64,000 bases of DNA, taken from positions 1-64,000 of the IMG/VR virus record IMGVR_UViG_3300035070_002626, one strand, 5' to 3'. The notes under the pieces were generated by a model, which was not told the DNA's origin, searched no databases, and saw only the letters and a list, made by a program, of their open reading frames with translations. A program made the translations under genes and the position numbers. Positions 25,567 to 52,039 of the stretch are shown piece after piece (position 1 is the first letter of the stretch; every line of letters begins with the position of its first letter).

Positions 25567-25582
25567 CGTGCCACTCCGGCTG

Positions 25583-27037: not shown

Positions 27038-27041
27038 ATTT

Positions 27042-27129: not shown

Positions 27130-27308
27130 TATTTTATTCTTTTCCAATGTAATTCGCCATCCAACGGTAAACGCCCTCTGTATTCTACACCCGTTTCGTC
27201 GTCAATTAGTCGCCACTTACTTGGGCACTTGGTAATTACGTTAAGTTCAACAGCTACATCAATAGCGGGTACTTCTGTACCGTCTTGTAAAGTTCTAGTC
27301 AAGCTCAT
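27129..27308 (-). CDS. Small hypothetical protein (59 aa, MSLTRTLQDG...TKCPSKW..ID.ETG..Y)
   Basis: Translated by hand; GGAGG RBS. Confidence 0.6.
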   Translation of the reverse strand: MSLTRTLQDGTEVPAIDVAVELNVITKCPSKWRLIDDETGVEYRGRLPLDGELHWKRIK

Positions 27309-27723: not shown

Positions 27724-27733
27724 ATTAAATAAA

Positions 27734-28456
27734 TTATGCCTGTTTAAAACTGTCCTCGATTAGATCTTTAATAGTGTGCAAGTTAGCACCAATATCTAAT
27801 ACCACTCTAGGCTCGTTGCTTCTGTTTAATACCCAATGGGCATATCTATAGTTATTAATCAAGTATGCATTGCGTTCAACAATTGGAAGATTTCCCCATT
27901 TATAAAAACCAAATTCATTGCCTTCACTCCATTTTAGAGGAATGTAAATTTTATTTAATGCACGGGCACCCTGGGTAGGATCAACGTGAGGGAAAAGATA
28001 TCCGCCTGGCGGCAACACATAAAAGTTAACAATGTTGATATCCTGGGGGTTTGGAAAAAGCTTCTCAACAAACTGTCTAATAGGGTGATCAACATTTAGT
28101 CGCCATTCAAATTTAAAGTCATTGCGGTGTAACATACACAGCCGGTCTTCGTCATTTGCTTTCTGTTTGTCTGCTGCAAATTTTACCCATGCATCCCAGT
28201 CTGCCGGGCCAAACAAAACTTGACCGTTCCATTCTTTGATTTGATAGTCAACCTCAATGTGTTCGTTGTCATTGGTAAACAGCCATTGCTGTCTCCAGTT
28301 GGTGCTTTGTTCTACTGCTTGGTCAAATACATTTTGATCAAACTCCGGGACATCAATGTTTAACTTGGTCCAAGGTACTCCGCTGTCTAGATAATGGTCA
28401 AGATCAAACTGGTTATTATTGCTTAGTTCTTCGATTAGTTTAGGGAATTTATGCAT
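27734..28456 (-). CDS. Asp/Asn beta-hydroxylase-like 2OG-Fe(II) cupin
   Basis: LPPGG.L.PHVD, IYIPL, H.V.N.S..PR. Confidence 0.7.
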   Translation of the reverse strand: MHKFPKLIEELSNNNQFDLDHYLDSGVPWTKLNIDVPEFDQNVFDQAVEQSTNWRQQWLFTNDNEHIEVDYQIKEWNGQVLFGPADWDAWVKFAADKQKANDEDRLCMLHRNDFKFEWRLNVDHPIRQFVEKLFPNPQDINIVNFYVLPPGGYLFPHVDPTQGARALNKIYIPLKWSEGNEFGFYKWGNLPIVERNAYLINNYRYAHWVLNRSNEPRVVLDIGANLHTIKDLIEDSFKQA

Positions 28457-28871
28457 CGTAACCGTCCATTAAAAACTTCCAAATTGGTGTTTTGATATCT
28501 AATTCAAATGTACCATTGTGATAAAACACGCTGCAAGGCTGATAGTAATCAGGTGGCAAAAATTCTCTATAAAAATTTTCATCATAGCAAGGAAAGTACT
28601 TTCCTTTGTAAAAATGATGTTGTAGATTTATGTCGTCTATTACTACTTTTACAAGTTCCACAAATGTGTCTTTTTCAGAATCGGGTATGTGTACTTTGTC
28701 AAAAAATTGTATTCTCAATTGATCAATTGGCGAAAAATCAATCTCAGTTGTTACTGTAAACTTTCCGTCTTGTACTGAATCATATTCTGTAGTGTTGTTG
28801 TGTCTATTAGAAACGCTGATTTTAGGATCGCCGCCAGCAACTGATCCTATAAATTCTAATTCAACCTTCAT
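28449..28871 (-). CDS. Hypothetical beta-rich protein (paralog family)
   Basis: GGGAG RBS before MKVELEF; similar to 33488..34081. Confidence 0.6.
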   Translation of the reverse strand: MKVELEFIGSVAGGDPKISVSNRHNNTTEYDSVQDGKFTVTTEIDFSPIDQLRIQFFDKVHIPDSEKDTFVELVKVVIDDINLQHHFYKGKYFPCYDENFYREFLPPDYYQPCSVFYHNGTFELDIKTPIWKFLMDGYDA

Positions 28872-29037
28872 AATTAACTCCCGCTGTGCATTAATCCTAT
28901 TAGTAAAGGATAGCAGTTTTGTGTCTTGCTCAGGACACTCTGGGCACCATTTGCTCAATTGTTTTACAAGAGGAACAAAACCCTATATGTGTAAGCTAAC
29001 CGTGGGCTTATACGAGCGTATTAAGTCGCTACACTAT

Positions 29038-29121
<84 letters not shown>

Positions 29122-29193
29122 ATGTATTACATTATATACTATCTACTTATAGTGTCAATCCTGCTCGGTTAAAAAAACTCTACAATACATAAC

Positions 29194-29424
29194 TTATTCC
29201 GGAATTGTTTTATATGTTCCTTCGGTGCTACTATATGCAAGTATTAATTTTTCCCACTGCCTGTCCGACATTTCAATCACTGATACCCACACATCATCGT
29301 CATTAATGGCTTGTGTAATTAACACTGATTCCTCTCCAAAATACATTTTTACATCTTGAAACTCACCTTGTGAGTCCAGTACTGTAACAACGGTTTCGTC
29401 AAACTCTTCTTCGACTGTGAACAT
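29194..29424 (-). CDS. Hypothetical acidic protein
   Basis: ORF between tRNA genes. Confidence 0.6.
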   Translation of the reverse strand: MFTVEEEFDETVVTVLDSQGEFQDVKMYFGEESVLITQAINDDDVWVSVIEMSDRQWEKLILAYSSTEGTYKTIPE

Positions 29425-29443
29425 TTTTACTTGCGTCCTAAAT

Positions 29444-29520
29444 TGGCGATCTCTGCAGGATTCGAACCTGCGACCTAGTGCTTAGAAGGCACTTGCTCTA
29501 TCCAGCTGAGCTAAGAGACC
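29444..29520 (-). tRNA. tRNA-Arg(UCU)
   Basis: AGTGC-CTTCTAA-GCACT; canonical D and T arms; CCA. Confidence 0.95.
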
Positions 29521-29533
29521 ATGTTATAATAAT

Positions 29534-29562
29534 AGTATATGATATAGTGTTACTGTTGTCAA
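29534..29562 (-). promoter_or_regulatory. sigma70-type promoter for tRNA-Arg
   Basis: TTGACA-N17-TATACT; the -35 box overlaps the upstream TGA stop. Confidence 0.75.
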
Positions 29563-30575
29563 CCTAAATAATCGATACACCCATCAGTGTCTCTATTCAA
29601 CTCATTTGTTAGGCAGGTCATGCCTTGGTTGAAAAAATGAGAATATGTAAAATCAACAAAAATTACTTCAATTTGATACTTGTTAAACTGATCTAGTAGG
29701 TATTGATTGTTTTTGTAATGGCTGTACATCATAACAGTGTTAGTGTCAAGACTTAATGTATTAACTGCTAGAACCGTGTTAGCAAAGTCATCGTCTTGAA
29801 TTTTATCGTCTACTAAAGTCTGAGGTAGACTCAACGATTTATCATGATCGGGATTAACATGAATGATATCCCAATTTCTAAAGTATTCTGGCAAGCTTTC
29901 TTTGCTATGATAAGTGAGCAACAGCCCTGGTCTCAGTATAGACAAATGACTATCCAAATGCCCACTAAAAACATTTTTATCCAACTGATGATATCGATAG
30001 TCTGGGTACATTGCTTGTAGCCATTGGCGCCCTAGTTCATTATGGCTTCCGCACCCGCTAACAAATATGTCTTTTCCGTACCTTAAAATTGCAGCACCGT
30101 CTAATATCGGATCTTGTTCTACTACAATGTCGTCATAGTCAACTTCTATGTTTTTGTAATCATGTCTGGGCAACGGCATGTTAAGCCAACGTGCGCCGCT
30201 TTGGAGTTTTTCAATTAGCAAATCTCTCCAGTAGTAAGTTTCAAACGTTCTTTCTTTTTGCCAACTAGCTGACTCAATAATGTCGTTGCCCATAACTAAA
30301 AACACATCTCTCGGGGTTAATGGTATTTTTGTTCCCATGCTATCCCAATAAGGAGTGCAAACTTGTGTGTTGTTAATACTAACCGGGCGATGAACTTTAA
30401 TATTCCTTGATTCAAGGATTTTTTGTATCTGATTGAGTTCTTTTTTTGTTTTGTTAAAAATATGAGTAAGTCTTGGGCGTTGTGCAGCATCGCAAAAATC
30501 TATCACATTGTGATCAACATCACCTAACATTATTTCTTTAACTGTGTCAAATGTATTAAACGAGTTTATTGTCAT
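29559..30575 (-). CDS. Amidinotransferase family protein (copy 2)
   Basis: PLTPRD, LDGAA, GHLDSH, LRPG, VNTLSLD, QGMTCLT. Confidence 0.78.
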   Translation of the reverse strand: MTINSFNTFDTVKEIMLGDVDHNVIDFCDAAQRPRLTHIFNKTKKELNQIQKILESRNIKVHRPVSINNTQVCTPYWDSMGTKIPLTPRDVFLVMGNDIIESASWQKERTFETYYWRDLLIEKLQSGARWLNMPLPRHDYKNIEVDYDDIVVEQDPILDGAAILRYGKDIFVSGCGSHNELGRQWLQAMYPDYRYHQLDKNVFSGHLDSHLSILRPGLLLTYHSKESLPEYFRNWDIIHVNPDHDKSLSLPQTLVDDKIQDDDFANTVLAVNTLSLDTNTVMMYSHYKNNQYLLDQFNKYQIEVIFVDFTYSHFFNQGMTCLTNELNRDTDGCIDYLG

Positions 30576-31111
30576 CTTTTTTCCCAAGGGTTGTTTGCAT
30601 TCTCGTCAAGGAATACCCAGTCTTCTTTGCTGCTAAGTATTTTTGATATAGGTGATTCTTTGTCAAATTTACTTTTCCAATCGTATCCTGCTGCAAATTT
30701 AAAAATTATTTGACCAAACCATCCAAACGTATTTCCATTGATGCCATATATAATATCTAAATAATGTTCCTGCTCGTCTTCGGTTAACTCATTCCACCAT
30801 TCTTGGTTTAGTATAGGTCTATAATCTGCATTATAAAAATTCAACCAAGCATTGTTGATCAAAATTGAATTTATTTTTAAATATTTGTGCTGTGCTTCTA
30901 CATTTCCTGAAAATTCAAAACAGATTGTGTTTTGCTCAGACTCAACATACTCGTTGTAAAATCTTATTGTTTCGCTGTGCACCACGCCTGGCGAGTATAC
31001 TTTTTCAAACATCACTGAATCATTAATGCTTACTTTGATTAAAACATCTGTGTTCTCATGATATACTTCGATTGGTATGCTATGTGAAAAAATCAATGAT
31101 CGGTTATTCAT
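30572..31111 (-). CDS. Hypothetical beta-rich protein (paralog family)
   Basis: VSIND...LKINSILIN...FGWFG...F.F. Confidence 0.6.
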   Translation of the reverse strand: MNNRSLIFSHSIPIEVYHENTDVLIKVSINDSVMFEKVYSPGVVHSETIRFYNEYVESEQNTICFEFSGNVEAQHKYLKINSILINNAWLNFYNADYRPILNQEWWNELTEDEQEHYLDIIYGINGNTFGWFGQIIFKFAAGYDWKSKFDKESPISKILSSKEDWVFLDENANNPWEKR

Positions 31112-31136
31112 ATCGTTCTTCGTCCTGCACATGTGT

Positions 31137-31211
31137 TGGAGCGGGTGATGAGATTCGAACTCACGACAACTTCGTTGGCAACGAAGAGCTCTACCACTGA
31201 GCTACACCCGC
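31137..31211 (-). tRNA. tRNA-Gly(GCC)
   Basis: CTTCG-TTGCCAA-CGAAG; U73; CCA. Confidence 0.95.
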
Positions 31212-31223
31212 TTGTAGTATTAG

Positions 31224-31940
31224 TTATACTGTATCTACTTGTTCGGTTAAAATTCTAAAAGTGTCGTTCCAGTCAGCAACTTTGTATGATTTGCCTCTGT
31301 TTTGTTCAGCTATTGCATCTGCTAAAGGGGCGTCATTGCCGCCGGGGAAAATCGCATCACCAAAAAAATGTAGTTCGTCAGTGTCGGCAAAATCAACTAA
31401 TATCTGACTTTTGTTATTGCCTTTTGGTGCAATATCTAATCCTGTTTCCCCACCTGATGTAGCAAGTAACTCTGGAAACATTAAGTTAAATGATTTAACA
31501 ATCCTAGCACGTTCACGTTGTGCTTTATCCCATGTAACGTATAATGCACGTTCGGTTAAACTAGCGTTACGACCTACTACACTAAAGTTTACCATACCAG
31601 ATCGTTCTTCGATGTGATTGCCAGTGCGTACTGGAAATTTACTTTCGTACTCACAACTGTCTAAGAAATACCTGGCAAGATCGGGTAACCTCCAATTACT
31701 AGTACGAACATTTTTATCGCCTTGCCACACATCACTACCAGAACATTGGTAAACACGCTGACATTTGTGGTAAATGTACTCGCCAATTTGTTCGACAGTT
31801 TTAGGTTTGTCGCTCCCAGTGACAAGATACACAAGATTGTTTTCACAAAACTTGCTAAACCACACAGCAAATTGTTTGTCCATGTGCTGCCTGCTATCAG
31901 TAAGTGTACCGTCTACATCAAATATGTACTTTTTTGCCAT
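31224..31940 (-). CDS. HAD-IIB phosphomannomutase-like enzyme (PMM family)
   Basis: FDVDGTLT, VTGSD, IE.R.GMVNFS..GR, GG...DI, FFGD...GGND. Confidence 0.85.
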   Translation of the reverse strand: MAKKYIFDVDGTLTDSRQHMDKQFAVWFSKFCENNLVYLVTGSDKPKTVEQIGEYIYHKCQRVYQCSGSDVWQGDKNVRTSNWRLPDLARYFLDSCEYESKFPVRTGNHIEERSGMVNFSVVGRNASLTERALYVTWDKAQRERARIVKSFNLMFPELLATSGGETGLDIAPKGNNKSQILVDFADTDELHFFGDAIFPGGNDAPLADAIAEQNRGKSYKVADWNDTFRILTEQVDTV

Positions 31941-33444
31941 CTTCTTTCCTGATTACATAATTGTTAATTATTAATACATCAAGACCGCATTTCTTAAATG
32001 TGGCAACTGCATCCTCGGGTGTTTCTACAATAGGCTCCTGGCAGTTGAAGCTGGTGTTGAGCAACATAGGAACGCCTGTTAGGGTATAGAATGCATTTAT
32101 TAAGTCGTAGTAGCAAGAATTAAACTCGCGCTGTACAGTCTGTATACGTGCTGTGCCGTCTACATGTGTTACACCAGGAATAGTATTACTTGTAACTGGC
32201 ATGATACGGCTCATGTACGGACTAGGCTGGTTGGTATCAAAATAATCTTGATAATGTTCATACAATACACTTGGCGCAAATGGTCTGAAGTCTTCACGCA
32301 GTTTAATTTTACTGTTGATAATATCTTTAATATCTGGCTTGCGTGGATCTGCAAGTATACTCCGATTGCCTAACGCTCTGTGCCCGCTTTCGCTAGCACC
32401 CTGATACCATCCAACTATTGCACCATCGGCAATAGCAGCGGCAACTTCAGTGTATACTTCTTCCATTGATTTTTGTTGATAGTACAATCCGTTGAATATA
32501 GCAGTGTCTACAATGTAGTCTTCTCCTGCATACACTGTAGGAATATGTGTGTTACCATTTAAAATGTAATCAGCATGCATGTAAACGCCTAATGCCTGGC
32601 CTTCGTCACCAGGAGCCGGCGGCACATGTACATTTGTGTAATGCTTTGTAAACTCTTCATTCATATAACCGTTGTATGCAACTCCGCCTGCAATGCATAA
32701 ATTGTCTGATGTTTTAAGAGGATATACGTGTTTTGTAACAAGTTCAAATGTAACTTGTTGTAGCGTAAATGCTACATCCTCTTTAGCAACACGCTGTATA
32801 ATATCATGTGCACCGTCAGGGAGTCGTTGATTGGGATTTTCTAAATAACGATGAATCATTGTGTAAACTTCATCGTTATATTTTCCAAATCCTACCAAGC
32901 CCATAACCTTGCCGGCTTGGAGGAATTCAAATCCAAGATTCTGTGCTAATGTGTTCCAACACCCGCCAATTGACAGTTCCTTGGTCAAGTCAGTGATTGT
33001 ACCGTGTTTATTAATAAAGATACAATTAAAATTATAACCCTTGTCGTCAATCGCTAGTACATCACTTTCTTTAAAGCCTGAATTTAGAAATGCATAAGCA
33101 GCATGACTTTGGTGATGGTCGATATAGTAATAACTATCTGTGTGTAATCTATCCCATAGATTGTTTGGCTTAAACTTTAAAAAATCTGTGTCCGGTAAGG
33201 TCTCTTCTACTAAGTCTTCAACATATTCATGTCCTAAATTAGAAATAGTAAATGCAAATACTTGCTCTTTATTATAGTTAGGCAAGAAATGGTCGTCGAA
33301 AAAATCCCTACAGGGCACAGGGTCACGCAAGAAATCCGGATTAAGATTATGCTTTACTCTGGTGTGCCGTTCTATTTGGTTATGAACCAGACCGTTGTAT
33401 GTATTGTGATCGTGGTGATTTACTGCTATAGAAAATATTTTCAT
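31918..33444 (-). CDS. Carbamoyltransferase, NodU/CmcH family (copy 2)
   Basis: HHQSHA, AGKVMGL, GGVAYN, RALGNRSILADP, REDFRPFAP, HVDGTAR, LNTSFN. Confidence 0.9.
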   Translation of the reverse strand: MKIFSIAVNHHDHNTYNGLVHNQIERHTRVKHNLNPDFLRDPVPCRDFFDDHFLPNYNKEQVFAFTISNLGHEYVEDLVEETLPDTDFLKFKPNNLWDRLHTDSYYYIDHHQSHAAYAFLNSGFKESDVLAIDDKGYNFNCIFINKHGTITDLTKELSIGGCWNTLAQNLGFEFLQAGKVMGLVGFGKYNDEVYTMIHRYLENPNQRLPDGAHDIIQRVAKEDVAFTLQQVTFELVTKHVYPLKTSDNLCIAGGVAYNGYMNEEFTKHYTNVHVPPAPGDEGQALGVYMHADYILNGNTHIPTVYAGEDYIVDTAIFNGLYYQQKSMEEVYTEVAAAIADGAIVGWYQGASESGHRALGNRSILADPRKPDIKDIINSKIKLREDFRPFAPSVLYEHYQDYFDTNQPSPYMSRIMPVTSNTIPGVTHVDGTARIQTVQREFNSCYYDLINAFYTLTGVPMLLNTSFNCQEPIVETPEDAVATFKKCGLDVLIINNYVIRKEDGKKVHI

Positions 33445-33487
33445 CAGACTCTCTGTTTTGTTAAACATATAATAACACTGATAGTTG

Positions 33488-34081
33488 CTATACGTCAACC
33501 ATTCTTTTTAAATCGTGAATAGTAAAATCACTATCTTTGGCGATAGTCACTATTTCGCCCATTCGTTCAAACACTTCTTCGCCATCTGCGGTCTCTGTTT
33601 GATTAACATGTGCCTGAGCTTCATCTAACCAAAACGTGGTAAAATAATCAATATCGCTATTGTCTGTAAAATTAAACTTGTATATACCATTGAATCCAAA
33701 ATAAAGGTTGTTAATAATGAACTCAGGCGGGGTTTCATTTTTTTCGTGGTAGTCACTAACAATATTCTCAGGCCAGTTAACATAAAACGGCATTGTGTGC
33801 AGCACTGTGTGCAGTATTGAATTATTATCTATTGTTATATCTAGTAGTTCAACGCTTAAATCAGCTACAATATTATTACTATCGTCAACAATGGTATCGT
33901 CGTTGGTTTTGTTATAGTGTTCAATGGACAATACATTTTGCAACAATGGTTGAATGTTTAACGTGTGTTCATTAATCTCAGAAATTTCAGTATCAACATA
34001 TACTGTATCGTTAACAGATAGTCTCACCTTAGGTGATTTTCCATTGGCACAGTTGCCACGGAGCTTAATCTTTATTTCCAT
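33488..34081 (-). CDS. Hypothetical beta-rich protein (paralog family)
   Basis: SPKVRLSVND...HYNKT..DT...VEL.DITID...LYFGFNG.Y.F.F. Confidence 0.6.
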   Translation of the reverse strand: MEIKIKLRGNCANGKSPKVRLSVNDTVYVDTEISEINEHTLNIQPLLQNVLSIEHYNKTNDDTIVDDSNNIVADLSVELLDITIDNNSILHTVLHTMPFYVNWPENIVSDYHEKNETPPEFIINNLYFGFNGIYKFNFTDNSDIDYFTTFWLDEAQAHVNQTETADGEEVFERMGEIVTIAKDSDFTIHDLKRMVDV

Positions 34082-34099
34082 TATGTGCTAGCCTGTTTT

Positions 34100-35653
34100 T
34101 TAAAAATTTTGCTTTGAATGTGCCCATGGTTCAATGATATCAGCTGATAAACTGTTCTGTTCTCGATCAAACTTTACATTGTTAATCATAGTTCCAGTAT
34201 TATCTGTTAGTAGCTGAACTTCGTTCCAGCTACTCAGCAATTGCTTTGTATAGTTTGCTGCTTCGAAAACTGGATACCCCAATTCTTCAACATGTGATTG
34301 TAGGATAATCCTTCTCTTCAATCGTTCCTTGTATGTTAATGTCGGATTATCAACACAAACCCAATCATTAACATGATCATTGTCCTGCACTAGGTTATAT
34401 TTTTCTCTATCATCATATAATGGAGTGCGTTTTAATAGATTCAGTGTAAGTCCTAAATTTACTTCTTCGATTGTGCCGTTATCTAGATATGGCTTGTATC
34501 GAGTAAACATCTCTTTTGTTAAATCAAAATCTTCTATGGTCTCTGTAGGATACCCTACAATCATTAACATACGTACTTTGATCCCTACTCTATCTAGTTG
34601 GGAAATGCTGTAGTTAAGATCTTCTTCGCTATATCCCTTTTTCATGTGTTCTCTCACTGCCGGAGAACCGCTTTCGATTCCAACTAACATTGTACCTGCA
34701 CCAGCTGCCTTCATGACATCAAAGTCTTCGGGTGGCATCTGTTTTGGCCCACGTACAATAAAATGGGTGTCCCATATAAACTTTTTTTCTTCTGGTAGTG
34801 TTTTTCTGTATTCAGCTAACTCTAGAGTCATTTCCCTAAATGCTTTCATACTACCATTAATTAGACTATCTGTAAATCTAAATGCAGTTGCACCATATGC
34901 TTCAACTTGTTGACGCATTTCGTCAGCAATATTTTTGCCACTGCGATAGTAAAACTTTGGCCACATACTTGCAACATCACAAAATGTGCATTTTCTTACA
35001 CATCCTCTACTGCCAGTAATCGGCAATGCTTCCAACCCTTTGGAATTAGTGTAGGTTTTTAGTTCGTAGTCGTCATAATTGGGAAAAGCTAAACTATCAA
35101 CATCTACGATTTGCTGAGGAGGCTTGCCATTAATTCCAGGATAATCAATGTTTCCTTTAAGTAACTCGACTAATGCAAGTTCTCCTTCGCCCCGTATATA
35201 TGCGTCAATGATACGATTTTCGTGCAGAGACTCTGCAAATTTAAAATCTGTAGCAATTCCGCCGCCTCCGATTACAATTTTAATAGCAGGGTTGAGCTTT
35301 TTAATTGCAACAGATAGTAAGCGAGTTGCTCGTTGACTATTATAACTAAACACACTCATACCAACCCATGTTGGATTTTGATTAACAATTTTTTCGGCCC
35401 ACGATTCGATAACAGGAGCTAATAATTTCCATGTTTTATTATTATAGAATGTGTGATAAAAAAAGAAGTTGTCAATGGCGTTATGTAGTTCGTGATTATG
35501 AAACTGCTGATCAATTTCGGCATTAAGGTCAAAGATAATACTACTAAATCCGTGTGCAGATAAACTTCCCTTTAGCAATGCTGCTCCTGCTGGAGTATAC
35601 CCAAAATCGTCAACGATTCTCGGCGGTATTACTAACACAATATCTTTATTCAT
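34100..35653 (-). CDS. B12-binding radical SAM enzyme (class B methylase-like)
   Basis: N-terminal cobalamin-binding fold (GMSVF, IVIGG, GEGE); SRGCVRKCTFC; GIESGS; IVGYPTET. Confidence 0.88.
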   Translation of the reverse strand: MNKDIVLVIPPRIVDDFGYTPAGAALLKGSLSAHGFSSIIFDLNAEIDQQFHNHELHNAIDNFFFYHTFYNNKTWKLLAPVIESWAEKIVNQNPTWVGMSVFSYNSQRATRLLSVAIKKLNPAIKIVIGGGGIATDFKFAESLHENRIIDAYIRGEGELALVELLKGNIDYPGINGKPPQQIVDVDSLAFPNYDDYELKTYTNSKGLEALPITGSRGCVRKCTFCDVASMWPKFYYRSGKNIADEMRQQVEAYGATAFRFTDSLINGSMKAFREMTLELAEYRKTLPEEKKFIWDTHFIVRGPKQMPPEDFDVMKAAGAGTMLVGIESGSPAVREHMKKGYSEEDLNYSISQLDRVGIKVRMLMIVGYPTETIEDFDLTKEMFTRYKPYLDNGTIEEVNLGLTLNLLKRTPLYDDREKYNLVQDNDHVNDWVCVDNPTLTYKERLKRRIILQSHVEELGYPVFEAANYTKQLLSSWNEVQLLTDNTGTMINNVKFDREQNSLSADIIEPWAHSKQNF

Positions 35654-35687
35654 ATTTCTATTTACCGCTAATCGCATATTTGTGTTA

Positions 35688-35763
35688 TGGTGCCCCAAGA
35701 GAGACTCGAACTCCCGACCTACTGATTACAAATCAGTTGCTCTACCAGCTGAGCTATTGGGGC
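35688..35763 (-). tRNA. tRNA-Thr(UGU)
   Basis: ACTGA-TTTGTAA-TCAGT; CCA. Confidence 0.95.
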
Positions 35764-40249: not shown

Positions 40250-40632
40250 TTTACTTCTGTGTATCCGTCTCCGAGATCACGCTCTCTTGTAAAGCGTACT
40301 TCAGGATCTGCTTGGAATTGTTCGTATGTTTCCATAACAACATTACGGCATACATTTTGAAACCAGCGATCAACAATTTCGTGGTCAGGTTCATTTGGTT
40401 GTCCTTGGTAACCAGCCCTTACAAGATTTGCTATAAACTTTTCATTCCAGTCAAGTTCAAATGCGCCCTGGTCGATGTCACCTTCGGCAAGTTCCATGCT
40501 TAGTATAGCAACATAAGGCTCGCCCTTTTCAGTGGCAATCTCTTTGTCAGTTTTAGTTACTTTCTTGGGTTTAACAGCAGGCTTAACTTCTGGTTTTGTT
40601 AAGCCTAGTGTCTTTTTAAATTTATCAAACAT
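40246..40632 (-). CDS. Hypothetical phage protein
   Basis: AAGGA RBS before MFDKF; FELDWN..F motif. Confidence 0.65.
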   Translation of the reverse strand: MFDKFKKTLGLTKPEVKPAVKPKKVTKTDKEIATEKGEPYVAILSMELAEGDIDQGAFELDWNEKFIANLVRAGYQGQPNEPDHEIVDRWFQNVCRNVVMETYEQFQADPEVRFTRERDLGDGYTEVK

Positions 40633-41395
40633 GCGTGTTCCTTTTAAATACTGGGATAGGCTGCATCTTATGCAAATTGCGTTTGCGAATCTCAAGATAT
40701 TGTTTTACTTGAGTTTTGTCCTCTTCGCCAAGCGACTCAACATCAATACCTTGCTCGTCAATGTCCATGCATTTTTCTAAATCACTGTAGCTCATGCCAT
40801 GCAATTGATCCTCATCAACACGCCCATCATCCCACAATCCATCTGTGGGTTTGGCATCGATAATTTCTTGGCTAACTCCAAGTTGTTTACCTAATGCCCA
40901 TACTTCAGTTTTTGTTAAGTCTGCAATTGGAGAGATATCAACTCCCCCGTCTCCGTACTTAGTGTAAAAACCTACTCCAAAGTCTTCTACTTTGTTGCCT
41001 GTTCCGACTACAATACCGCCATGCGTTTGCGCTTTTTGATACAATGTCATCATGCGTAATCTGGCACGACTGTTTGCTAGTGCTAGTGGGGAATAAGCAT
41101 GTTGAAACAAGTCTTCAAACTTCTCGAATACATCTGTAAGATCGATTGTTTCAAAGCTGGCGTTCATGTACTGTGTGTTTAGGCGCAAGCAATGATCAAC
41201 ACCCAAGTCTGTTTGCTCTGCTTTTTGTCGAATTGGCATAACCAAGCACAACGTGGGCACACCGGATAACGCACACAGTGTACTGACAACAGCACTGTCA
41301 ATTCCGCCACTAACACCAACTACTAATTGATCAATCCCGTTTTTAAGTGCATATTCTCTAATCCATTGCGGAATATCTTTTGTTAAATCACTCAT
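40625..41395 (-). CDS. nadE: NH3-dependent NAD+ synthetase
   Basis: GVSGGIDS PP-loop, NSRARLRM, GTGN..E, GFYTKYGDG, PTDGLW, DEDQL. Confidence 0.92.
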   Translation of the reverse strand: MSDLTKDIPQWIREYALKNGIDQLVVGVSGGIDSAVVSTLCALSGVPTLCLVMPIRQKAEQTDLGVDHCLRLNTQYMNASFETIDLTDVFEKFEDLFQHAYSPLALANSRARLRMMTLYQKAQTHGGIVVGTGNKVEDFGVGFYTKYGDGGVDISPIADLTKTEVWALGKQLGVSQEIIDAKPTDGLWDDGRVDEDQLHGMSYSDLEKCMDIDEQGIDVESLGEEDKTQVKQYLEIRKRNLHKMQPIPVFKRNTHV

Positions 41396-41467
41396 AATTG
41401 CTTTCTTACTTTTTCGTATTGCTCTTCGGTAATCTTTTTGCCTTTAATATAATTCATGTCTTCTTTG

Positions 41468-42364
41468 CTAAGTCCCCCAGGCATTTCCGAATAAACTAAT
41501 GTGGAGTCGGGGAGTGAATCTCCATCCTTCGTCCATACACGCTTGGGCAACGTCATTAACATTGAGGGAATATTCTTCACTGCGACCGCCCATTGGCATA
41601 AGATATACTGGACATTGTACCCCGGCACTTTGATAAGCACTGACAGCTTTTTTGACTTCAACAAAATCGTCTTGATCAGCGACAACAAACTTAAAATAAA
41701 TGTCACTACCGTCAACAAGGCTGTACTCATGAGCAACATTAGGTTTAATAGCATCTTCCCAAGATTCTCCCGAAACACTAAGTTTTGGGGAACAACTCCA
41801 AGTGACTGTAAAGTCGTCATTGTTGTTGAGATAGTTGAAGAAATCATCGTGTAGGTGTTGTGTAGTGTTTGTTTCAAATGTAACATTTTTCAAGTCCTGC
41901 ATACGTGGGTGTTCAAATAGTTCAACATACAATCGTTGCCAAGCAAGCAATGGTTCACCACCAGTTAAGATAAGATGAACGTCTTGTCCATTGTCTTGCA
42001 CCCACTTACCATTGGGAGTAAGCGATAATAGATGTTCAACTACTTCGTCAATTGTTGCTTCTTTGTTAAAGTGCTTAAACTCGGGATAGATACTTGCATA
42101 TGTATCACAACCTGTGTGAATAATAGGCAAGTCATTAAACTCCTTAGTTGTTTTATCAACGCCGGCGTCCAATAATGCTTTTACTTCTGCATTGTAACGC
42201 TGCCCGTTTGCATGTTTTTCTGCACGACTGGGCTCATCTTTGCCGAGGCCAAAGTTCATACAACGCAAGTTACAACCAAAGGTGCGTAGGAATACACTGG
42301 GTACTCCTACAAACTTGCCTTCGCCTTGCACACTATAAAATGCTTCACTATATCTTAGTTTCAT
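41468..42364 (-). CDS. queE: 7-carboxy-7-deazaguanine synthase (radical SAM)
   Basis: FYSVQGEG, FLR.FGCNLRC...CDT, LTGGEP, FETN, SPK, RLH..LFG. Confidence 0.92.
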   Translation of the reverse strand: MKLRYSEAFYSVQGEGKFVGVPSVFLRTFGCNLRCMNFGLGKDEPSRAEKHANGQRYNAEVKALLDAGVDKTTKEFNDLPIIHTGCDTYASIYPEFKHFNKEATIDEVVEHLLSLTPNGKWVQDNGQDVHLILTGGEPLLAWQRLYVELFEHPRMQDLKNVTFETNTTQHLHDDFFNYLNNNDDFTVTWSCSPKLSVSGESWEDAIKPNVAHEYSLVDGSDIYFKFVVADQDDFVEVKKAVSAYQSAGVQCPVYLMPMGGRSEEYSLNVNDVAQACMDEGWRFTPRLHISLFGNAWGT

Positions 42365-42987
42365 TTCGATACCTCTTCGTTTGGATCCCAACGTTTCCAC
42401 CATTCTTCCCACGGAAATACTATCCAAGACGGGTCGTCGATTTTATTAATTTCTTCAGCGCAATATCTAATAGGTAATTTGCTTTCACTTGCAGTATTAT
42501 CATACAGCACAGCAACTCGTACTGTGTTCTCCCACACAAGATTCCACAACTGTTCGCTGTTGTCTCGACTAGGAGAACAATTGGCTTCCCAATCTTGCTT
42601 GATCCAGTTCAGCGTAGCACCACTGTCGTTAATATCGTCGACAATAAGGATTTTCTTTTTAAGAGATGGATCCCATCGTGCGCCAGACATACCAGTTTTA
42701 GTTTCATCATTGTAACCAAACGCTTCTTCGGCCATCCAGCAGTTACTTTCGCAATCTTCTGGTTTACCATCCCGCAACCGTACATCCAATGTGTGCATCT
42801 TAACATCGAGATACTGACTTATTAAGTTTGCAACTGTTAAGCCACCACGTGTAATACCGACAACATAATCTGGTTGCCAATTGTCAATTTGCATTTGTCG
42901 CAATATGTCTTGAGTTTGCCGTTGCACATCATGCCATGTTACAAATACTTTTTTCACACTTTTCTCGCTTTTACCATCATATGCCAA
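42361..42987 (-). CDS. Type I phosphoribosyltransferase (xanthine/guanine PRT-like)
   Basis: GITRGGL, LIVDDINDSGAT PRPP loop, WIVFPWE. Confidence 0.88.
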   Translation of the reverse strand: MAYDGKSEKSVKKVFVTWHDVQRQTQDILRQMQIDNWQPDYVVGITRGGLTVANLISQYLDVKMHTLDVRLRDGKPEDCESNCWMAEEAFGYNDETKTGMSGARWDPSLKKKILIVDDINDSGATLNWIKQDWEANCSPSRDNSEQLWNLVWENTVRVAVLYDNTASESKLPIRYCAEEINKIDDPSWIVFPWEEWWKRWDPNEEVSK

Positions 42988-43730
42988 CCCAGGTATTCGT
43001 TAACTGCTTCACGCATTTCCTCGCTCATAGCAGCAAACCAGGGTTCTAACACATAGTTTCCCTTCTTGTACTCTTCTATATTATACATGAAACAGTGGCT
43101 TTGGCGCAACCTTTCAATTGTCCATTTTGTAGTAGGCAACAACTCATATATCTCGTCTTTGCTATATGCTTGTGCATAAGGACACGCATCTTGTGCTTCG
43201 TATTGATCCAGACCTTTTTGTATCATTGCCATTTTCCAAGAGTTTTTAGCATATACCAAAAGACGCAGTTCGCCGCCGTCAACTAGTGCATTGTGCATGT
43301 TGTTCAAGCTCAATTCAATGTCTGGAAAATGGTGTATTACTCCCATGCTGTATACAAAGTCAAATTTACCAAGATCGCTAAGGTCATCCTGTACATTACG
43401 CACATGAAACTCTCCGGGTAATCCTAGTACATCAAATCTCTGTTTACAAAGATCGATGCTTACACTAGAAAGATCAATGCCTACATATTCAGCTCCGTGT
43501 TTAGCAAATTCTTCAGCTTCGGTTCCAATGCCTGATCCTACTTCAAGTACTCGTTTTCCTTGCCATTGGTGATATCCAGCAAATTCACGTAGGTGCGGCT
43601 CGACTTTAAATCGTCGCTTGCTAACTTCGGCAAAAAACTCTTTAGTACCAACAGGGCTTGTGCCATGATTGATATTACACGGCTGAGCATTCCAGTAATC
43701 TGCAATGCGTTGTTTTAAATCACTGCTCAT
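42954..43730 (-). CDS. Class I SAM methyltransferase
   Basis: VLEVGSGIG, GIDLS, FDFVYS.GVIHH. Confidence 0.88.
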   Translation of the reverse strand: MSSDLKQRIADYWNAQPCNINHGTSPVGTKEFFAEVSKRRFKVEPHLREFAGYHQWQGKRVLEVGSGIGTEAEEFAKHGAEYVGIDLSSVSIDLCKQRFDVLGLPGEFHVRNVQDDLSDLGKFDFVYSMGVIHHFPDIELSLNNMHNALVDGGELRLLVYAKNSWKMAMIQKGLDQYEAQDACPYAQAYSKDEIYELLPTTKWTIERLRQSHCFMYNIEEYKKGNYVLEPWFAAMSEEMREAVNEYLGWHMMVKARKV

Positions 43731-44556
43731 ATTTCCAAGTTCCTAAAAATCCTTGAGGGTCGTTTTCTCTCATGCGTGTCCAGACGTCATACCCGCCTTT
43801 ACGTGCACCATCTAAATATCCATTGTCTTGACCAAGTCGTTTGCGGAACCATTCCATTTTGTAACCCCATAGAATCCTTGTTTGCGCAGTCGGGGGATAA
43901 AGAAAATCCTTGGGGTTAGACATGTCGCCTTCGAGTCGTTCTGGCTGTCGCTCTGCATATGTTTCGTCGTCGTTGTTGCCAGTTAAGTCAGCTCTGTCGT
44001 GGATGCACTCGCTTTTGAGTTGAATCATTGCATCACATATATATGCTACTTGACTAATCCATCCGTCGGTAATAACATGCGGAGATACACAGCCAAAAAG
44101 TATCAACCAATCTCGGGGAATAACCGGAAAGATAGCATATGGATGACCGTGATTATCTGAGAATCTTTGTACTGCAAATTGCCCTGAATGGCTGAGAATT
44201 TCAGTGTCCCATCCCTTGCTCACCATTATAGCATCATCATTCCAAACACACAGCCATTCGCCTTTACTATGCTGGGCTAATATATTAGTGTATTCGTTTA
44301 GTCGATGATATCCCATGCGAGGTTGTGTAAACACATACAGATCTAAATCTGCTTCTTCAAAATATGGAATCATGTCACTTTCAACATAGTCAATAGTTTT
44401 TTGATCATCGTCATCAATTGCAATCATGAATTCAATATCATGCGGGTTATCAGCAGTATCAATCATGCTCTGCATACTGCTCAATGCTTGTACTGGTCTC
44501 CCGCGAGTTGGGAACATTACAGATATTTTCTTACTTGGATTAATTTGAAATGTCAT
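43720..44556 (-). CDS. GT2-like (GT-A) glycosyltransferase
   Basis: ISVMFPTRGR, IDDDD, WNDD (DxD-like). Confidence 0.75.
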   Translation of the reverse strand: MTFQINPSKKISVMFPTRGRPVQALSSMQSMIDTADNPHDIEFMIAIDDDDQKTIDYVESDMIPYFEEADLDLYVFTQPRMGYHRLNEYTNILAQHSKGEWLCVWNDDAIMVSKGWDTEILSHSGQFAVQRFSDNHGHPYAIFPVIPRDWLILFGCVSPHVITDGWISQVAYICDAMIQLKSECIHDRADLTGNNDDETYAERQPERLEGDMSNPKDFLYPPTAQTRILWGYKMEWFRKRLGQDNGYLDGARKGGYDVWTRMRENDPQGFLGTWKYEQ

Positions 44557-45173
44557 TATCGTTTCTCTATAATTTTATCAGCCAAGCCCCATTCAACTGC
44601 TTCTGCCGCAGTAAGGAATGTATCAAACTTCATAGTCTCTGACATTTCGTCATATGTCTTGCCGGCTGTGTTGTGCTTAACGTAAAGCTCTGTAAGGCGT
44701 CGATTTACTTTTTTGCTCTCTTCCATGCTGCGTACTGCATCTTCAAACTGTAGCTCTTGGACATACACACTACCGCTTGTTCCACGTGTACCTGAGCTCA
44801 CACGGTGAATCATTGTTCGTGATTCTGGCAATACAATACGCTTGCCTGCTGCACCTGCTTGTGCAAGGAATGAGCCCATGCTGCATGCTTGTCCGATAAC
44901 TACTGTGGATACATCGCACTTGATAAATTGCATGGTATCGTAAATACCAAGTCCTGCACTTACCTGCCCTCCTGGGCTGTTAATATAAAGCAAGATGTCC
45001 TTGTCTGGGTCTTCGCTTTCTAAAAACAACAGTTGTGCAATAATTGCATTAGCCATATTGTCCTCAACTGGACCATTCAGCATGATAATACGATCTTTCA
45101 GTAATCGACTGTAAATGTCGTATGCACGTTCGCCTTTTGAAGTAGTTTCAACTACCATTGGAATTAAGGACAT
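44556..45173 (-). CDS. clpP: ATP-dependent Clp protease proteolytic subunit
   Basis: [24 protein letters not shown] (Ser), MIH (His). Confidence 0.95.
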
Positions 45174-45649
45174 TATTCAGAAAACCTTTCTTTGCGTACA
45201 ATAAATGGTGTGTAAATTGCGCTGTTAGCACCGTGCTCCATGCACTCTGCAGATTCGCACCAACAACGATTGTCTGTTGCTTCTCTAATAAGTTTATCAG
45301 CAAACTTCCATGCGTGTTCTGCAAACTTTTCTGCACCCACTCCGTCTAGTACTGTAACTTCTGCTAGACCCATGTTTTCAAGTTCTGCAAACTTGTACAA
45401 GAACGGATCTTCTCTATCAATTACTGTCTTATGATCAAATGTATCTTCTAGCCATGCTTTAAGAGGTTTAAGTCCTCCAAAGTCAACGGCCCAGTTTTTA
45501 TTGTCTAGCTCGCTACATCCAAATGTAAACTTGAAACCCAAACTATATCCGTGTAAGAATTTACAATGTGAATGGTCTGCATGTGGTTGACGGAACACCG
45601 CTGAAAGTCCGATGTTGTGTCCGTAAGTTTTTGTTGAATAATGTGGCAT
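45173..45649 (-). CDS. queD: 6-carboxy-tetrahydropterin synthase
   Basis: [22 protein letters not shown]-terminal E...N.A. Confidence 0.9.
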
Positions 45650-45675
45650 TCTATTTTCCTTAATGTAACAGGTCA

Positions 45676-45708
45676 GAATGTTTTAAGACGGATGATCCTT
45701 CGACGTCT
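45676..45708 (-). promoter_or_regulatory. Candidate preQ1-I-like riboswitch upstream of queD
   Basis: AGACG-UCGAAGGAUCAUC-CGUCU-UAAAACAUUC: 5-bp P1, UCG...C loop, A-rich tail, possible GAA:UUC pseudoknot. Confidence 0.5.
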
Positions 45709-45718
45709 ATAATAGTTA

Positions 45719-46444
45719 TCAGTTCTTCCAGACGTGTGCAGAATAACCTTTACCATTGGTATCCCCGCCCTGATTGTCTAGTTCTTCTCCATTGTAAGAC
45801 ACACCGTCGATGATGTCTTCCCCGTTTGGATATTCATTGCAGTGGAACATCAGTTTCTTAGGATCAAATTCGCCTACTGTTTTGATGATAGCATCAAAAA
45901 AACTGCCTTTTTCACTGCTATACATTTGTAGTACGTATTCGCCTTGTTCTTCATACTCTTCACCTTCGCCCCAATCGGTGCCTTCAACCTCGTAATTGGT
46001 TTCCTCTTGCAACTTGTCAACTAGGTCGCTTACTTTGTCGTCAATTACATCAGCAACATGCTTGCTCATGTATTCATCACTGTCAACTTCGTTGATAATA
46101 AGATAAGCACTACTGTATTCAACTCCCATTTGGTGACAAAACTCATTAGGTGCTTCGTACCAAGGTGATTTAAATGCGGATTCGCCATATTCAGTTAGAA
46201 AGTCTGCTTCTTTCGGAATAGTTCCTAGTTCATCGTAATCACAATCGTCTGGATCATCATTGATCAGATACTCTACCAAGTCGCTGTCGTGATGCTCTTT
46301 TAAGTGTGCGTTCCAAAATTCATATGCTTCTTTGGTGATATTTATGTATGCTGCTTCACCACCATAACCTCCAATGCTAAGACGATAATATCGTGGGCCC
46401 TTGATAGTGTCAATTAGTTCTTCTTTTTGTTCAATACTAGCCAT
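45719..46444 (-). CDS. Hypothetical highly acidic protein
   Basis: GGGAG RBS before MASIEQK. Confidence 0.65.
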   Translation of the reverse strand: MASIEQKEELIDTIKGPRYYRLSIGGYGGEAAYINITKEAYEFWNAHLKEHHDSDLVEYLINDDPDDCDYDELGTIPKEADFLTEYGESAFKSPWYEAPNEFCHQMGVEYSSAYLIINEVDSDEYMSKHVADVIDDKVSDLVDKLQEETNYEVEGTDWGEGEEYEEQGEYVLQMYSSEKGSFFDAIIKTVGEFDPKKLMFHCNEYPNGEDIIDGVSYNGEELDNQGGDTNGKGYSAHVWKN

Positions 46445-46823
46445 TTGTATAACTCCCTGCGCCCGGAATAACATTGCGAACACCGCCAGTTGGGTCAGCG
46501 CAATCCCCTTCACGACGGAAAATTAAATGTACATGAGGATACATACAAGTTTGCCCGGCGCTCTCGCCTATGTTAATGCCAACATTGTATCCAGTGATTT
46601 CATTATTTTGTACTTGAACATTTTCGTGTCCCATGGTGCATGCATATTTGAAACACTTCATAATGCTATCCAGTGTAGCATCACGAGGTACAACAAGAGT
46701 ATGCCCAGGAGTAACCGGAAAACCATCGTTGAAAATTACAAAATCTCTAGTTTCAAACTGCACATTAGTCCAAGGTGCTCGACCTTCGGCTTGTGCTACG
46801 GCTAACGTATCTAGTCTATCCAT
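46437..46823 (-). CDS. HIT-family nucleotide hydrolase
   Basis: FPVTPGHTLVVP, GYNVG.N.G..AGQ...PHVHLI. Confidence 0.9.
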   Translation of the reverse strand: MDRLDTLAVAQAEGRAPWTNVQFETRDFVIFNDGFPVTPGHTLVVPRDATLDSIMKCFKYACTMGHENVQVQNNEITGYNVGINIGESAGQTCMYPHVHLIFRREGDCADPTGGVRNVIPGAGSYTNG

Positions 46824-46873
46824 TGTATTCTCCGTTGTGTATAGATTTATTGTACTATGTTTAATAGTATATG

Positions 46874-47746
46874 TCAACCTTTTTCGAGTAATCTGTGCAG
46901 TGACTTAGAATCAGTAGGAAAAATATTTAGGCCATCACATCGTATTTCGTAACCCAAAGATCGCAATCGTTGTTGTACAATTGAAGCAGCAACTATGTTT
47001 AGTTCTTTCCAACTAAACGCAACATCGTTAATAGTATTATCAACGACAACATCTAACAAATTAAACTCGTCTATTATATATTGTTGTTTTTTTATCCACT
47101 CTTCGACGAACAAATCTATGTCGACCATTGCTTGTGCATTGCAAAAACTAAAAATACGGGTGATAGCATCTTTGGTCTGAAATAACATCTCAGTAGTGGA
47201 TATTTTTAAAAAACTATCTGGTACTTCGTATTTTGAATTAATCCATTGTTGCACGTATGTAACATAAAACAAACTCATCCACTCTCGCCATTCCCAGGGT
47301 TGCATTTGACTCCAGTGTGTATACTCGCTGTTCCATTTTACAATATCACATTCATTTCCAATGGCAAATGTTTCGAGACCTAGCTGACGCCTTTTCCCTA
47401 CTGCAATTTTATGATACTGGAACAATAAGTTGAGTTCGGCTGCCCGTAATGATTCTGCATATATTAATATATTTTTACTAGAGGGGGTAAGCGGATACGT
47501 TTCTAAAATTTTAGAAAGGGTCCCGTCTCTGGTTGGATATATAGGAGTGGCTATTTCTGCGTCTATGGTTTGATTATAAGCCGACATACTAAGTGGATGC
47601 CAAGATTTTGCAAACCCGTGAACAGAACCGTCGGGTTGTAAACCACGATCCAACAGTTCCGGATTTGTAAAATTATTACTAAACTCTCTCAGTATATACT
47701 CAACTGTTGAGCCAAACATACCTGGCACAAAAAATATCGAGATCAT
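46874..47746 (-). CDS. Hypothetical protein, AT-rich insert
   Basis: Long ORF; no recognised motif. Confidence 0.6.
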   Translation of the reverse strand: MISIFFVPGMFGSTVEYILREFSNNFTNPELLDRGLQPDGSVHGFAKSWHPLSMSAYNQTIDAEIATPIYPTRDGTLSKILETYPLTPSSKNILIYAESLRAAELNLLFQYHKIAVGKRRQLGLETFAIGNECDIVKWNSEYTHWSQMQPWEWREWMSLFYVTYVQQWINSKYEVPDSFLKISTTEMLFQTKDAITRIFSFCNAQAMVDIDLFVEEWIKKQQYIIDEFNLLDVVVDNTINDVAFSWKELNIVAASIVQQRLRSLGYEIRCDGLNIFPTDSKSLHRLLEKG

Positions 47747-48445
47747 TTACTTTCCACAGGAAAACTCTTGTTGCAATTTGATGTTGTCAAAGAATTCTTT
47801 CTTTGTACCAGAGTCTTCCCTGAAACTACCTTTAAGCACAGTTGTTTGGGTAAGACTACTACTCGCCATAATGCCGCGATTCTCACAACAACCGTGTGTT
47901 GCTTGGATATACACACCCAGGTTTTCTGCACCGGTGGCGCTGGAAATCTCCCGTGCAATATCATTTGCAAGTTCTTCTTGTAGAGTTCCACGCCGAGCGC
48001 ACCATTGTGCAATACGTGTGTACTTGCTGAGTCCAATAAGTTTATCAGCAGCAATAATACCAATGTATGCTACACCGCTTACTGGCTGGTGGTGATGACT
48101 ACACATGCTCTTTAGCTCACTGCGCACTACTAGCATACCTTCATAGCGATCGTCGCTGTCATTGGGAAATGCAGTTGCACTTGGCATAGGATCATAACGT
48201 CCTGCCATGATCTCGTTAAAGTACATCTTAGCCAGTCGACGTGCAGTGCCGTGTGAGTTAGGGTCGTTCTCTCGATCAATCAACAGTGTGTCGAGCACAC
48301 CTTCAAACGCTGTAGTAGCCTCGTTAATCAAATCTTCTTTAATGTTAGGTGTAATATAATCTGAAATATTATCGCCGGCCCAGTATCGTTTGCCTTCTGC
48401 TGTCATATTATCACGCAGAATTTGCGATGTTGTTTTGTTTGTCAT
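47747..48445 (-). CDS. folE: GTP cyclohydrolase I
   Basis: T.RR.AKM, SMCSHH, IGLSK..R, LQE, H.C...RG. Confidence 0.95.
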   Translation of the reverse strand: MTNKTTSQILRDNMTAEGKRYWAGDNISDYITPNIKEDLINEATTAFEGVLDTLLIDRENDPNSHGTARRLAKMYFNEIMAGRYDPMPSATAFPNDSDDRYEGMLVVRSELKSMCSHHHQPVSGVAYIGIIAADKLIGLSKYTRIAQWCARRGTLQEELANDIAREISSATGAENLGVYIQATHGCCENRGIMASSSLTQTTVLKGSFREDSGTKKEFFDNIKLQQEFSCGK

Positions 48446-48451
48446 TTGTTT

Positions 48452-48478
48452 CTCCGAGTTAGGGTCGTGGATGACCAC
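48452..48478 (-). promoter_or_regulatory. Candidate compact pseudoknot leader sequestering the folE RBS
   Basis: GGUC-AUCCAC-GACC-CUAAC-UCGGAG; loop UCC is complementary to GGA of the Shine-Dalgarno. Confidence 0.4.
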
Positions 48479-51619: not shown

Positions 51620-52039
51620 TTATGAATTATTATAATTTATAGTACATCCGTTTTCGCCATCCTCGCTAACTTCAATGACAACATTTCGCCCTGGGTATTT
51701 GCCAGCTACATTAAGATAGATATCGTCTGCAATCATTTCGCAACTTTTGTAATCCAGTGACAAAATTCCATCGCCAAACAGTTTTTGCAACCAACGTGAA
51801 AACTGAATAAACTCGATGTCTCTGTCATTGTGGAATACATCAATTCCCACACGAAAATGAAACATATGCCTGTGCGGATGTCCTAGAAACGATACATCGT
51901 CCCAATCGCCTGTTGCTAATTTAGGATCAGTTAATGCTGCTGGATACTTGTGTATGCCTTCCTTTTGAAAGGTTACCCAAATTTGCCGACGTGCAGATTG
52001 CATCGTTGCATCAATCACGGTGCGTTCATCTTGATTCAT
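51620..52039 (-). CDS. QueD-paralog T-fold protein, DpdL-like (putative CDG decarboxylase)
   Basis: FLGHPHRHMF matches LxxxHRHxF; DRDIEF, SCE, VSEDGENG. Confidence 0.65.
   Translation of the reverse strand: MNQDERTVIDATMQSARRQIWVTFQKEGIHKYPAALTDPKLATGDWDDVSFLGHPHRHMFHFRVGIDVFHNDRDIEFIQFSRWLQKLFGDGILSLDYKSCEMIADDIYLNVAGKYPGRNVVIEVSEDGENGCTINYNNS

Follow-up and report, generated by a model that had tools for sequence, protein, structure and literature searches.

We asked what the small hairpin is that lies in front of the queD gene of a marine jumbo phage, whether it is a real RNA element, whether it is a class I preQ1 (preQ1-I) riboswitch, and how it might regulate queD. The stretch analysed here (the window) comprises 64,000 nucleotides, positions 1 to 64,000 of IMG/VR record IMGVR_UViG_3300035070_002626, a 299,910-bp, 86%-complete jumbo virus. 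A sequence-only reading of the window had proposed a preQ1-I-like aptamer about 27 nt before the queD start and, since the pathway in the window appeared to stop at CDG/DG, had inferred a variant aptamer that senses another deazapurine and gives feedback control of a phage DNA-modification pathway. We found that the hairpin belongs to a conserved RNA pseudoknot located ahead of queD in hundreds of uncultured, mostly marine viruses, built like a class I preQ1 riboswitch but matching no Rfam family in our scans, and we regard it as a strong candidate for a new, virus-restricted metabolite sensor.

The hairpin upstream of queD

All genes in this part of the window are on the minus strand. Read on that strand, the stop codon of an unannotated ORF (45721-45719) is followed by a 10-nt spacer, the 5' arm AGACG (45708-45704), a 13-nt loop UCGAAGGAUCAUC (45703-45691), the 3' arm CGUCU (45690-45686), the tail UAAAACAUUC (45685-45676), the sequence UGACCU (45675-45670), a Shine-Dalgarno sequence (SD) AAGGA (45661-45657) and the queD AUG (45649-45647). 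C45676 lies 27 nt before the A of the AUG at 45649, so the hairpin exists exactly as it had been described, in letters, coordinates and distance, although the coordinates given (45676-45708) stop one base short of the 3' strand of the pseudoknot helix (45675-45670). The downstream gene, queD (45173-45649, minus strand), encodes a protein of the 6-carboxy-tetrahydropterin synthase (PTPS/QueD) family (Pfam PF01242, E 3e-13; PHROG 2389, 'QueD-like', E 6e-40).

On this sequence alone the hairpin is not above chance, as the minimum-free-energy fold of the 91-nt leader does not contain it and has z = 0.20. A search with the Rfam preQ1 models, which had been named in advance as a way of checking the idea, was negative: no Rfam family fitting the element reached its gathering score at this site in the window or in 20 related loci, RF00522, RF01054 and RF02680 included, and no preQ1 model appeared at E<=10 in a 601-nt scan or in scans of four leaders of 73-91 nt (the window and the homologous leaders L005, L072 and L086, our labels for individual loci). 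These short scans returned no SAM-II/V, THF or other plausible family, only chance hits of 8-14 bits to snoRNA-type models and 'freshwater-2'. The single-sequence fold and the start of the element 10 nt after the upstream stop codon would also suit a chance hairpin or the intrinsic terminator of the upstream gene; however, the hairpin is followed by UAAAAC and not by a U-tract, no terminator-like site was found in 44400-46700, and the covariation and the association with queD described below refute this explanation, which we consider practically excluded.

Conservation and covariation in homologous queD leaders

A search of viral contigs with the QueD protein gave more than 599 loci, of which we examined the best 80 (75-100% identity). 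The 110 nt upstream of each gene showed the same element at the same place in about 61 of them, and about 17 had no element, in which the promoter was followed directly by the SD. The stem changes by compensation (AGACG/CGUCU, AGAGG/CCUCU, AGUGG/CCACU, AGCGG/CCGCU, UGCGG/CCGCA and a 4-bp AAGG/CCUU), and a second helix, P2, which joins the loop to the 3' tail and makes an H-type pseudoknot, is highly variable in sequence but stays complementary (GUGU/ACAC, UACG/CGUA, GGCAU/AUGCC, GACUU/AAGUC). Conservation and covariation in related queD leaders was the criterion that had been set beforehand for the riboswitch proposal, and the outcome is strongly positive.

MAFFT alignments of mixed loop lengths pushed the gaps to the 5' end and misaligned the P1 5' arm, and we therefore used ungapped subsets of the same geometry (A3, A7 and A9) and an anchored alignment made in Python. 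In alignment A6 (29 sequences), P2 was paired in 73% of cells against 53% in shuffles, with a covariation score of 0.53 against 0.19 (0 of 500 shuffles as high); column pairs 19-38 (GC 20, AU 9), 15-42 (GC 18, CG 11) and 14-43 (four pair types) were never unpaired. In A7 (21 ungapped sequences), P1 and P2 together were 96% paired against 75%, with a score of 0.61 against 0.19 (0 of 500), slid controls reached at most 0.24, six of seven P2 pairs showed double changes, and P1 pair 3 was AU 11/UA 10. In A9 (12 sequences of the window's loop length, window included), P1 and P2 were 79.5% paired against 65%, with a score of 0.42 against 0.15 (0 of 500), P1 pair 3 was AU 8/UA 3/CG 1 and pair 4 was CG 7/GC 5.

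Because the descriptor used to collect sequences required a perfect P1 and two P2 pairs, the statistics for A7, A9 and the 116 unique sequences below are partly circular. As an unbiased check, a pattern fixing only the core (UCR-N-C, the 3' arm, L3 and YG) was searched in viral contigs and hit at least 120 stretches; of the 108 unique hits, 95 had a perfect complementary 5' arm at loop length 13-19 (chance about 0.016 per sequence), and the five P2 positions beyond the mismatch paired in 0.82, 0.96, 0.97, 0.81 and 0.73 of sequences against 0.45, 0.42, 0.44, 0.64 and 0.51 for non-cognate partners. The sequences are phylogenetically related, so that shuffle controls overstate significance and these figures are not probabilities, but the QueD proteins behind them do diverge to 30-40% identity. 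We consider it almost certain that this is a real conserved structured RNA.

Anatomy of the pseudoknot

P1 is A-G-W-S-G paired with C-S-W-C-U, and in the window AGACG (45708-45704) pairs with CGUCU (45690-45686). Its loop-side closing pair is G-C in 116 of 116 unique sequences (G45704-C45690 in the window), and P1 pairs 2-4 co-vary. L1 is N-C-U followed by 1-7 variable bases; in the window it is UCGAA (45703-45699), and its second base, C45702, is invariant. Over 95 sequences, L1 position 1 is A68/U21/C6, position 2 is C in 95 of 95 and position 3 is U in 87 of 95. The P2 5' strand ends in an invariant U-C-R, which in the window is U45695, C45694 and A45693 within GGAUCA (45698-45693). L2 is one base (rarely two) and then an invariant unpaired C; in the window it is U45692 and C45691, directly 5' of the P1 3' arm, which is the position of the preQ1-I specificity cytosine (PMC11625349). 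C45691 is the candidate ligand-pairing base. The C is present in 95 of 95 sequences and the preceding base is U45/A31/C19. L3, UAAAACAUUC in the window (45685-45676), has the family consensus H-U-A-A-A-N-A-Y-U-C with AAA, A, U and C invariant, and is 10 nt long in 95 of 116 unique sequences and 7 or 11 nt in the rest.

The P2 3' strand is Y-G-N followed by 4-5 variable bases. In the window it is UGACCU (45675-45670), which pairs in register with 45693-45698 as A-U, C-G, U-A, an A.C mismatch, G-C and G.U. The Y-G pairs with C-R (GC 20, AU 9, none unpaired in A6) and the distal pairs show up to four pair types. In total about eleven unpaired positions are invariant in 95 sequences; they are more conserved than the helices or the protein, which is typical of a tertiary fold or pocket. 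G.U pairs are frequent, so the structure belongs to the queD sense strand. The window belongs to a distinct 'AGACG' subtype (24 contigs, 14 unique sequences, all preceding MPHYSTK-type QueD), in which the base opposite the invariant U of P2 is A, giving a U-A pair, and L1 position 3 is G or A and not U. This link is confounded by lineage, and a mutual-information search for tertiary contacts gave only lineage-confounded signals.

Specificity and distribution

A strict descriptor found exactly one site in the 299,910-bp record, the site described here, and one site in 50 shuffles of that record. A first covariance model, R1, built from one subgroup, was too narrow and missed the window subtype even with filters off. 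A second model, R2, built from 21 sequences without any of the window's subtype, aligned 45698-45670 (minus strand) as its best hit in the window and its only hit in the record, although the window's own copy scored weakly (14.5 bits, E 0.13-0.66) and its P2 has one mismatch and one G.U pair. Over 85 sources R2 found 79 leaders and no second copies. Among 120 of the pattern hits in viral contigs, 114 were followed within about 45 nt by a QueD homologue, of 30-90% identity.

A scan of 185,579 prokaryote species genomes with a pattern of 19 fixed bases gave six hits, two by chance and four true ones, and the true hits all lie on short MAG contigs with a sigma-70-like promoter upstream and queD downstream. 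The three public MAGs concerned, labelled Rickettsiales MED657, Crocinitomicaceae and an uncultured Bacteroidetes, each hold two short contigs with the viral queD leader and queD (loci L201-L205 and L213-L215), and none of 150 other genomes from the family of the one MAG that was tested has the element, so these are most simply viral contigs binned into MAGs. BLAST of short leaders against GenBank phages gave only chance hits and tblastn of two QueD types found no cultured phage above 56% identity, so that no cultured carrier of the motif was identified. The phage QueD clade has C-x3-H-G-Y, preceded by H-x-H-C, at residues about 26-36, where E. coli QueD has C-x3-H-G-H, and the same HGY appears in distant motif-linked QueD proteins.

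Genomic context

In 55 of 114 leaders a sigma-70-like promoter matching at least 10 of 12 consensus positions lies upstream, its -10 hexamer mostly ending 6-12 nt before P1, so that the element starts the mRNA. In the window and its nearest relatives no such promoter was found directly upstream and the element is intercistronic, 10 nt after a stop codon and 20 nt before the AUG. A near-consensus sigma-70-like promoter (TTGACA, 17 nt, TATTAT; 11 of 12) at 46385-46413 (minus strand), about 680 nt upstream of the element, could be the promoter of the transcript that carries it; it lies inside the mechanically called ORF 45719-46513, whose true start is uncertain (gene callers give 241-251 aa). 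Marine and salt-marsh metatranscriptome assemblies contain contigs of about 90-95%-identical relatives that run across ClpP, queD, the leader (about 92%-identical relatives) and the upstream ORF (window 44600-46600), which is compatible with co-transcription but is not proof because DNA carry-over is possible, and such contigs do not show transcription or 5' ends.

The genes around queD vary between groups. In the window (40625-48478, minus strand) they are FolE, HIT, an unknown ORF, QueD, ClpP, a glycosyltransferase, a methyltransferase, an HPRT-like phosphoribosyltransferase, QueE (PHROG E 2.5e-53) and a NadE-like ATP-dependent amidotransferase; in other groups QueD is followed by an unknown protein, a glycosyltransferase and a radical-SAM enzyme, or by a FAD oxidoreductase and a DAHP-synthase-like protein. 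QueE lies within the fetched flanks in 32 of 199 loci and FolE in 14 of 199, and the only constant partner is QueD. No QueC or TGT/DpdA was detected in the 300-kb record, which agrees with the pathway ending at CDG that the sequence-only reading had assumed, although this absence rests only on Pfam-level searches. The cluster suggests a 7-deazapurine route that goes from CDG through a phosphoribosyltransferase, perhaps with amidation by the NadE-like enzyme, and not through QueC and DpdA, an idea that is untested, as is the link to DNA modification.

Comparison with known RNA families

The closest known system is the preQ1-I riboswitch (RF00522, types I-III; features from PMC11625349 and PMC10622847). 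Both are small H-type pseudoknots of about 40 nt with a 5-bp P1 closed by a conserved G-C (G5, the floor of the pocket), an unpaired invariant cytosine directly 5' of the P1 3' arm preceded by A (types II/III) or U (type I), an A-rich first part of L3, a P2 between the hairpin loop and the 3' tail, and a queuosine-pathway gene downstream. Both also have a cytosine at the second L1 position, C7 in the Thermoanaerobacter aptamer. P1 in many relatives reads AGAGG/CCUCU, L2 ends in AC or UC followed by the specificity C, and L3 begins AUAAA or UUAAA, so that an ordinary but diverged preQ1-sensing member might be considered.

However, the Rfam model does not recognise the element. L1 position 1, where preQ1-I has a conserved uridine that reads the ligand's minor-groove edge, is A in 68 of 95 sequences (the window itself has U45703), and the bases immediately before P2 are an invariant U-C and not the adenine that contacts preQ1, the invariant AAA lying at L3 positions 3-5 and a single A at position 7. 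P2 is about twice as long (6-8 bp; 2 bp, a conserved U.C or U-A interruption, then about 4-5 bp, against 3-4 bp), L2 is only 2 nt, L3 is 10 nt, and the SD most often starts 11-18 nt after the start of the P2 3' strand and does not lie within P2. In Pfam-level searches the record shows no QueC route to preQ1, and QueF was not searched. We therefore consider a diverged preQ1 sensor improbable, binding of preQ1 not having been measured, and the element should not be filed as a preQ1-I member but is best described as a preQ1-I-like variant, or sister class, with a remodelled pocket. The earlier interpretation is thus partly supported: the element and its pseudoknot architecture hold, whereas membership of preQ1-I and feedback logic are not supported as stated.

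Other systems are more remote. Adenine (add) and other translational ON riboswitches share the proposed logic, in which the 3' strand of an aptamer helix alternatively pairs with the SD/start region and ligand binding releases the ribosome-binding site, but the aptamer fold is unrelated (a three-way junction against a pseudoknot) and the logic here is predicted only. The THF-II (folE motif) and THF-I riboswitches are small aptamers in front of pterin or GTP-cyclohydrolase pathway genes that read a 2-amino-4-oxo (guanine-like) edge, and a pterin is one of the candidate ligands here, but the Rfam scans showed no sequence or structure match, the THF-II fold is different, and it is a bacterial element. 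The phage T4 gene 32 leader pseudoknot is an H-type pseudoknot at the 5' end of a phage mRNA that controls translation, but it binds a protein (gp32), has no conserved ligand-pocket-like loop bases and shows no sequence relation.

The last example raises the possibility of a conserved structured leader without a small-molecule ligand, either a translational operator bound by a phage or host protein or a 5'-terminal element that stabilises the mRNA. The element sits at the extreme 5' end of the transcript in half of the leaders, autoregulatory pseudoknots occur in phage leaders, and nothing here shows ligand binding. Against this, about eleven invariant unpaired bases are arranged as in a known ligand pocket, the element stays tied to one enzyme gene across QueD proteins only 30-40% identical while the neighbouring genes differ, an alternative pairing with the SD exists, and a stabilising element would not need a pseudoknot with fixed loop bases. 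We regard this explanation as unlikely, and sensing of a small molecule as probable.

Predicted regulation of queD

In the free fold of the window leader, 45680-45674 (CAUUCUG) pairs with 45653-45647 (UAGAAUG), which includes the AUG, and 45672-45670 (CCU) pairs with 45660-45658 (AGG) of the SD. These bases are the end of L3 and the P2 3' strand, so the pseudoknot and the sequestering helix exclude each other. For the window's leader sequence the probability that the SD is unpaired is 0.26 in the free fold and 0.96 with the aptamer sequestered. Across 115 leaders the means are 0.48 and 0.73, with a rise of more than 0.2 in 57 leaders and a fall in 3, and two thirds of the SD's pairing is with the aptamer region; this comparison alone is weak, because removing upstream bases from the pairing pool raises SD accessibility in any sequence. 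The duplex energy between the P2 3' region and the SD-AUG region is -6.40 for cognate pairs, against -5.67 +/- 0.12 for non-cognate pairs and -5.01 for shuffled sequences, and within the window's subtype the alternative helix co-varies (CCUAC..GUAGG against CCUAU..AUAGG). Competition between expression platform and aptamer is therefore predicted, but it does not overlap P2 in every subgroup and there are no experimental data, so the results do not settle whether such a platform operates throughout.

We presume that the element is a small-molecule-sensing translational ON switch: without ligand, the P2 3' strand and the end of L3 would pair with the SD/start region and block initiation, whereas ligand binding would lock the pseudoknot, take that strand away and free the ribosome-binding site. 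The architecture and the junction cytosine, stacked between P1 and P2 in this view as in class I preQ1 aptamers, argue for a ligand with a guanine-like Watson-Crick face, which could be a 7-deazaguanine such as CDG, preQ0 or 7-deazaguanine, or a pterin or guanine nucleotide upstream of QueD; a guanine-faced 7-deazapurine or pterin is our best guess. Our data demonstrate the sequence, its conservation, the covariation of both helices, its position between promoter and SD (in 55 of 114 leaders), its link to queD, its near-absence from cellular genomes and the lack of an Rfam match, whereas ligand binding, which was not assayed, the identity of the ligand and the direction of regulation are deduced from the architecture and from predicted folding. 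We hold this explanation as a whole to be slightly more likely than not, and an ON switch to be somewhat the likelier direction given that the element is a riboswitch.

The same aptamer could instead work as an OFF switch, as the proposed feedback implies, with an end product such as CDG, preQ0, preQ1 or a derivative stabilising a pseudoknot that hinders 30S binding sterically or through an extended stack with the anti-SD:SD helix. All characterised preQ1 riboswitches repress, and a preQ1-I pseudoknot still repressed translation when separated from the SD by spacers (PMC10018353); the spacers were up to about 10 nt long, and a compact pseudoknot 5-11 nt upstream of an SD can also repress translation sterically. 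In the AGUGG/AGAGG subgroup with ACUCC..GGAGU, the anti-SD overlaps P2 by only 2 nt, so the two helices could coexist, and in one large subgroup the apparent anti-SD lies downstream of P2 and does not overlap it, so ON logic may not hold throughout. On the other hand, in the window subtype and several others the SD/AUG partner is the P2 3' strand itself or the invariant UC-YG junction, so that the pseudoknot and SD sequestration are mutually exclusive, and an anti-SD acting in the ligand-free state would make both states OFF. We therefore consider an OFF switch possible but unlikely.

A further reading, which we put forward only tentatively, is that this is the first riboswitch class known only from viruses, a preQ1-I-like pseudoknot whose altered pocket (A/C/U, C and U in L1; U-C in L3) recognises a metabolite other than preQ1, such as CDG, 7-deazaguanine, a 7-deazapurine nucleotide or the pterin substrate of QueD, and switches translation of phage queD ON, giving the phage metabolite-gated control of its 7-deazapurine pathway during infection. 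Riboswitches carried by phages are rare and those known so far are copies of bacterial classes, such as the glutamine riboswitch in pelagiphage-like viruses (PMC9004378). Literature searches and a paper on phage 7-deazaguanine modification gave no earlier description of the present element, although the literature searched was incomplete and earlier publication elsewhere is not excluded. A structured RNA with riboswitch hallmarks that is abundant in marine viral contigs, absent from Rfam 15 and essentially absent from 185,579 cellular species genomes would show that viruses evolve or retain their own metabolite sensors. It also offers a very small (about 40 nt) aptamer with a pocket related to, but different from, that of preQ1-I, which is useful for understanding how ligand specificity shifts in this fold and as a compact, possibly activating, genetic switch, and it gives a handle on the purpose of phage FolE-QueD-QueE modules that lack QueC and DpdA.

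Additional features of the leaders and the window

A large subgroup of leaders (loci L081, L099, L101, L110, L201 and similar) shares a second conserved stretch 5-40 nt downstream of the pseudoknot, which reads AUCAAACUU(A/G)CU... and is followed by GGAG(G/A)C(A/U)AGAGAUG around the start codon. Its two versions, CUUACUC with GGCAAGAG and CUUGCUAC with GACUAGAG, go together, and no convincing pairing scheme was found for them. In the window, a 139-aa ORF at 51620-52039 (minus strand) has no Pfam hit but a strong match to PHROG 17812 of unknown function (E 3e-33); inspection by eye suggested a second T-fold/QueD-like protein, which is not established. The window also carries a permuted, alphaproteobacterial-type tmRNA gene and seven tRNA genes (24238-24573 and 20866-35763, minus strand; Rfam gathering hits), and permuted tmRNAs are a reported feature of pelagimyophage and Melnitz-like marine phages (PMC9004378).
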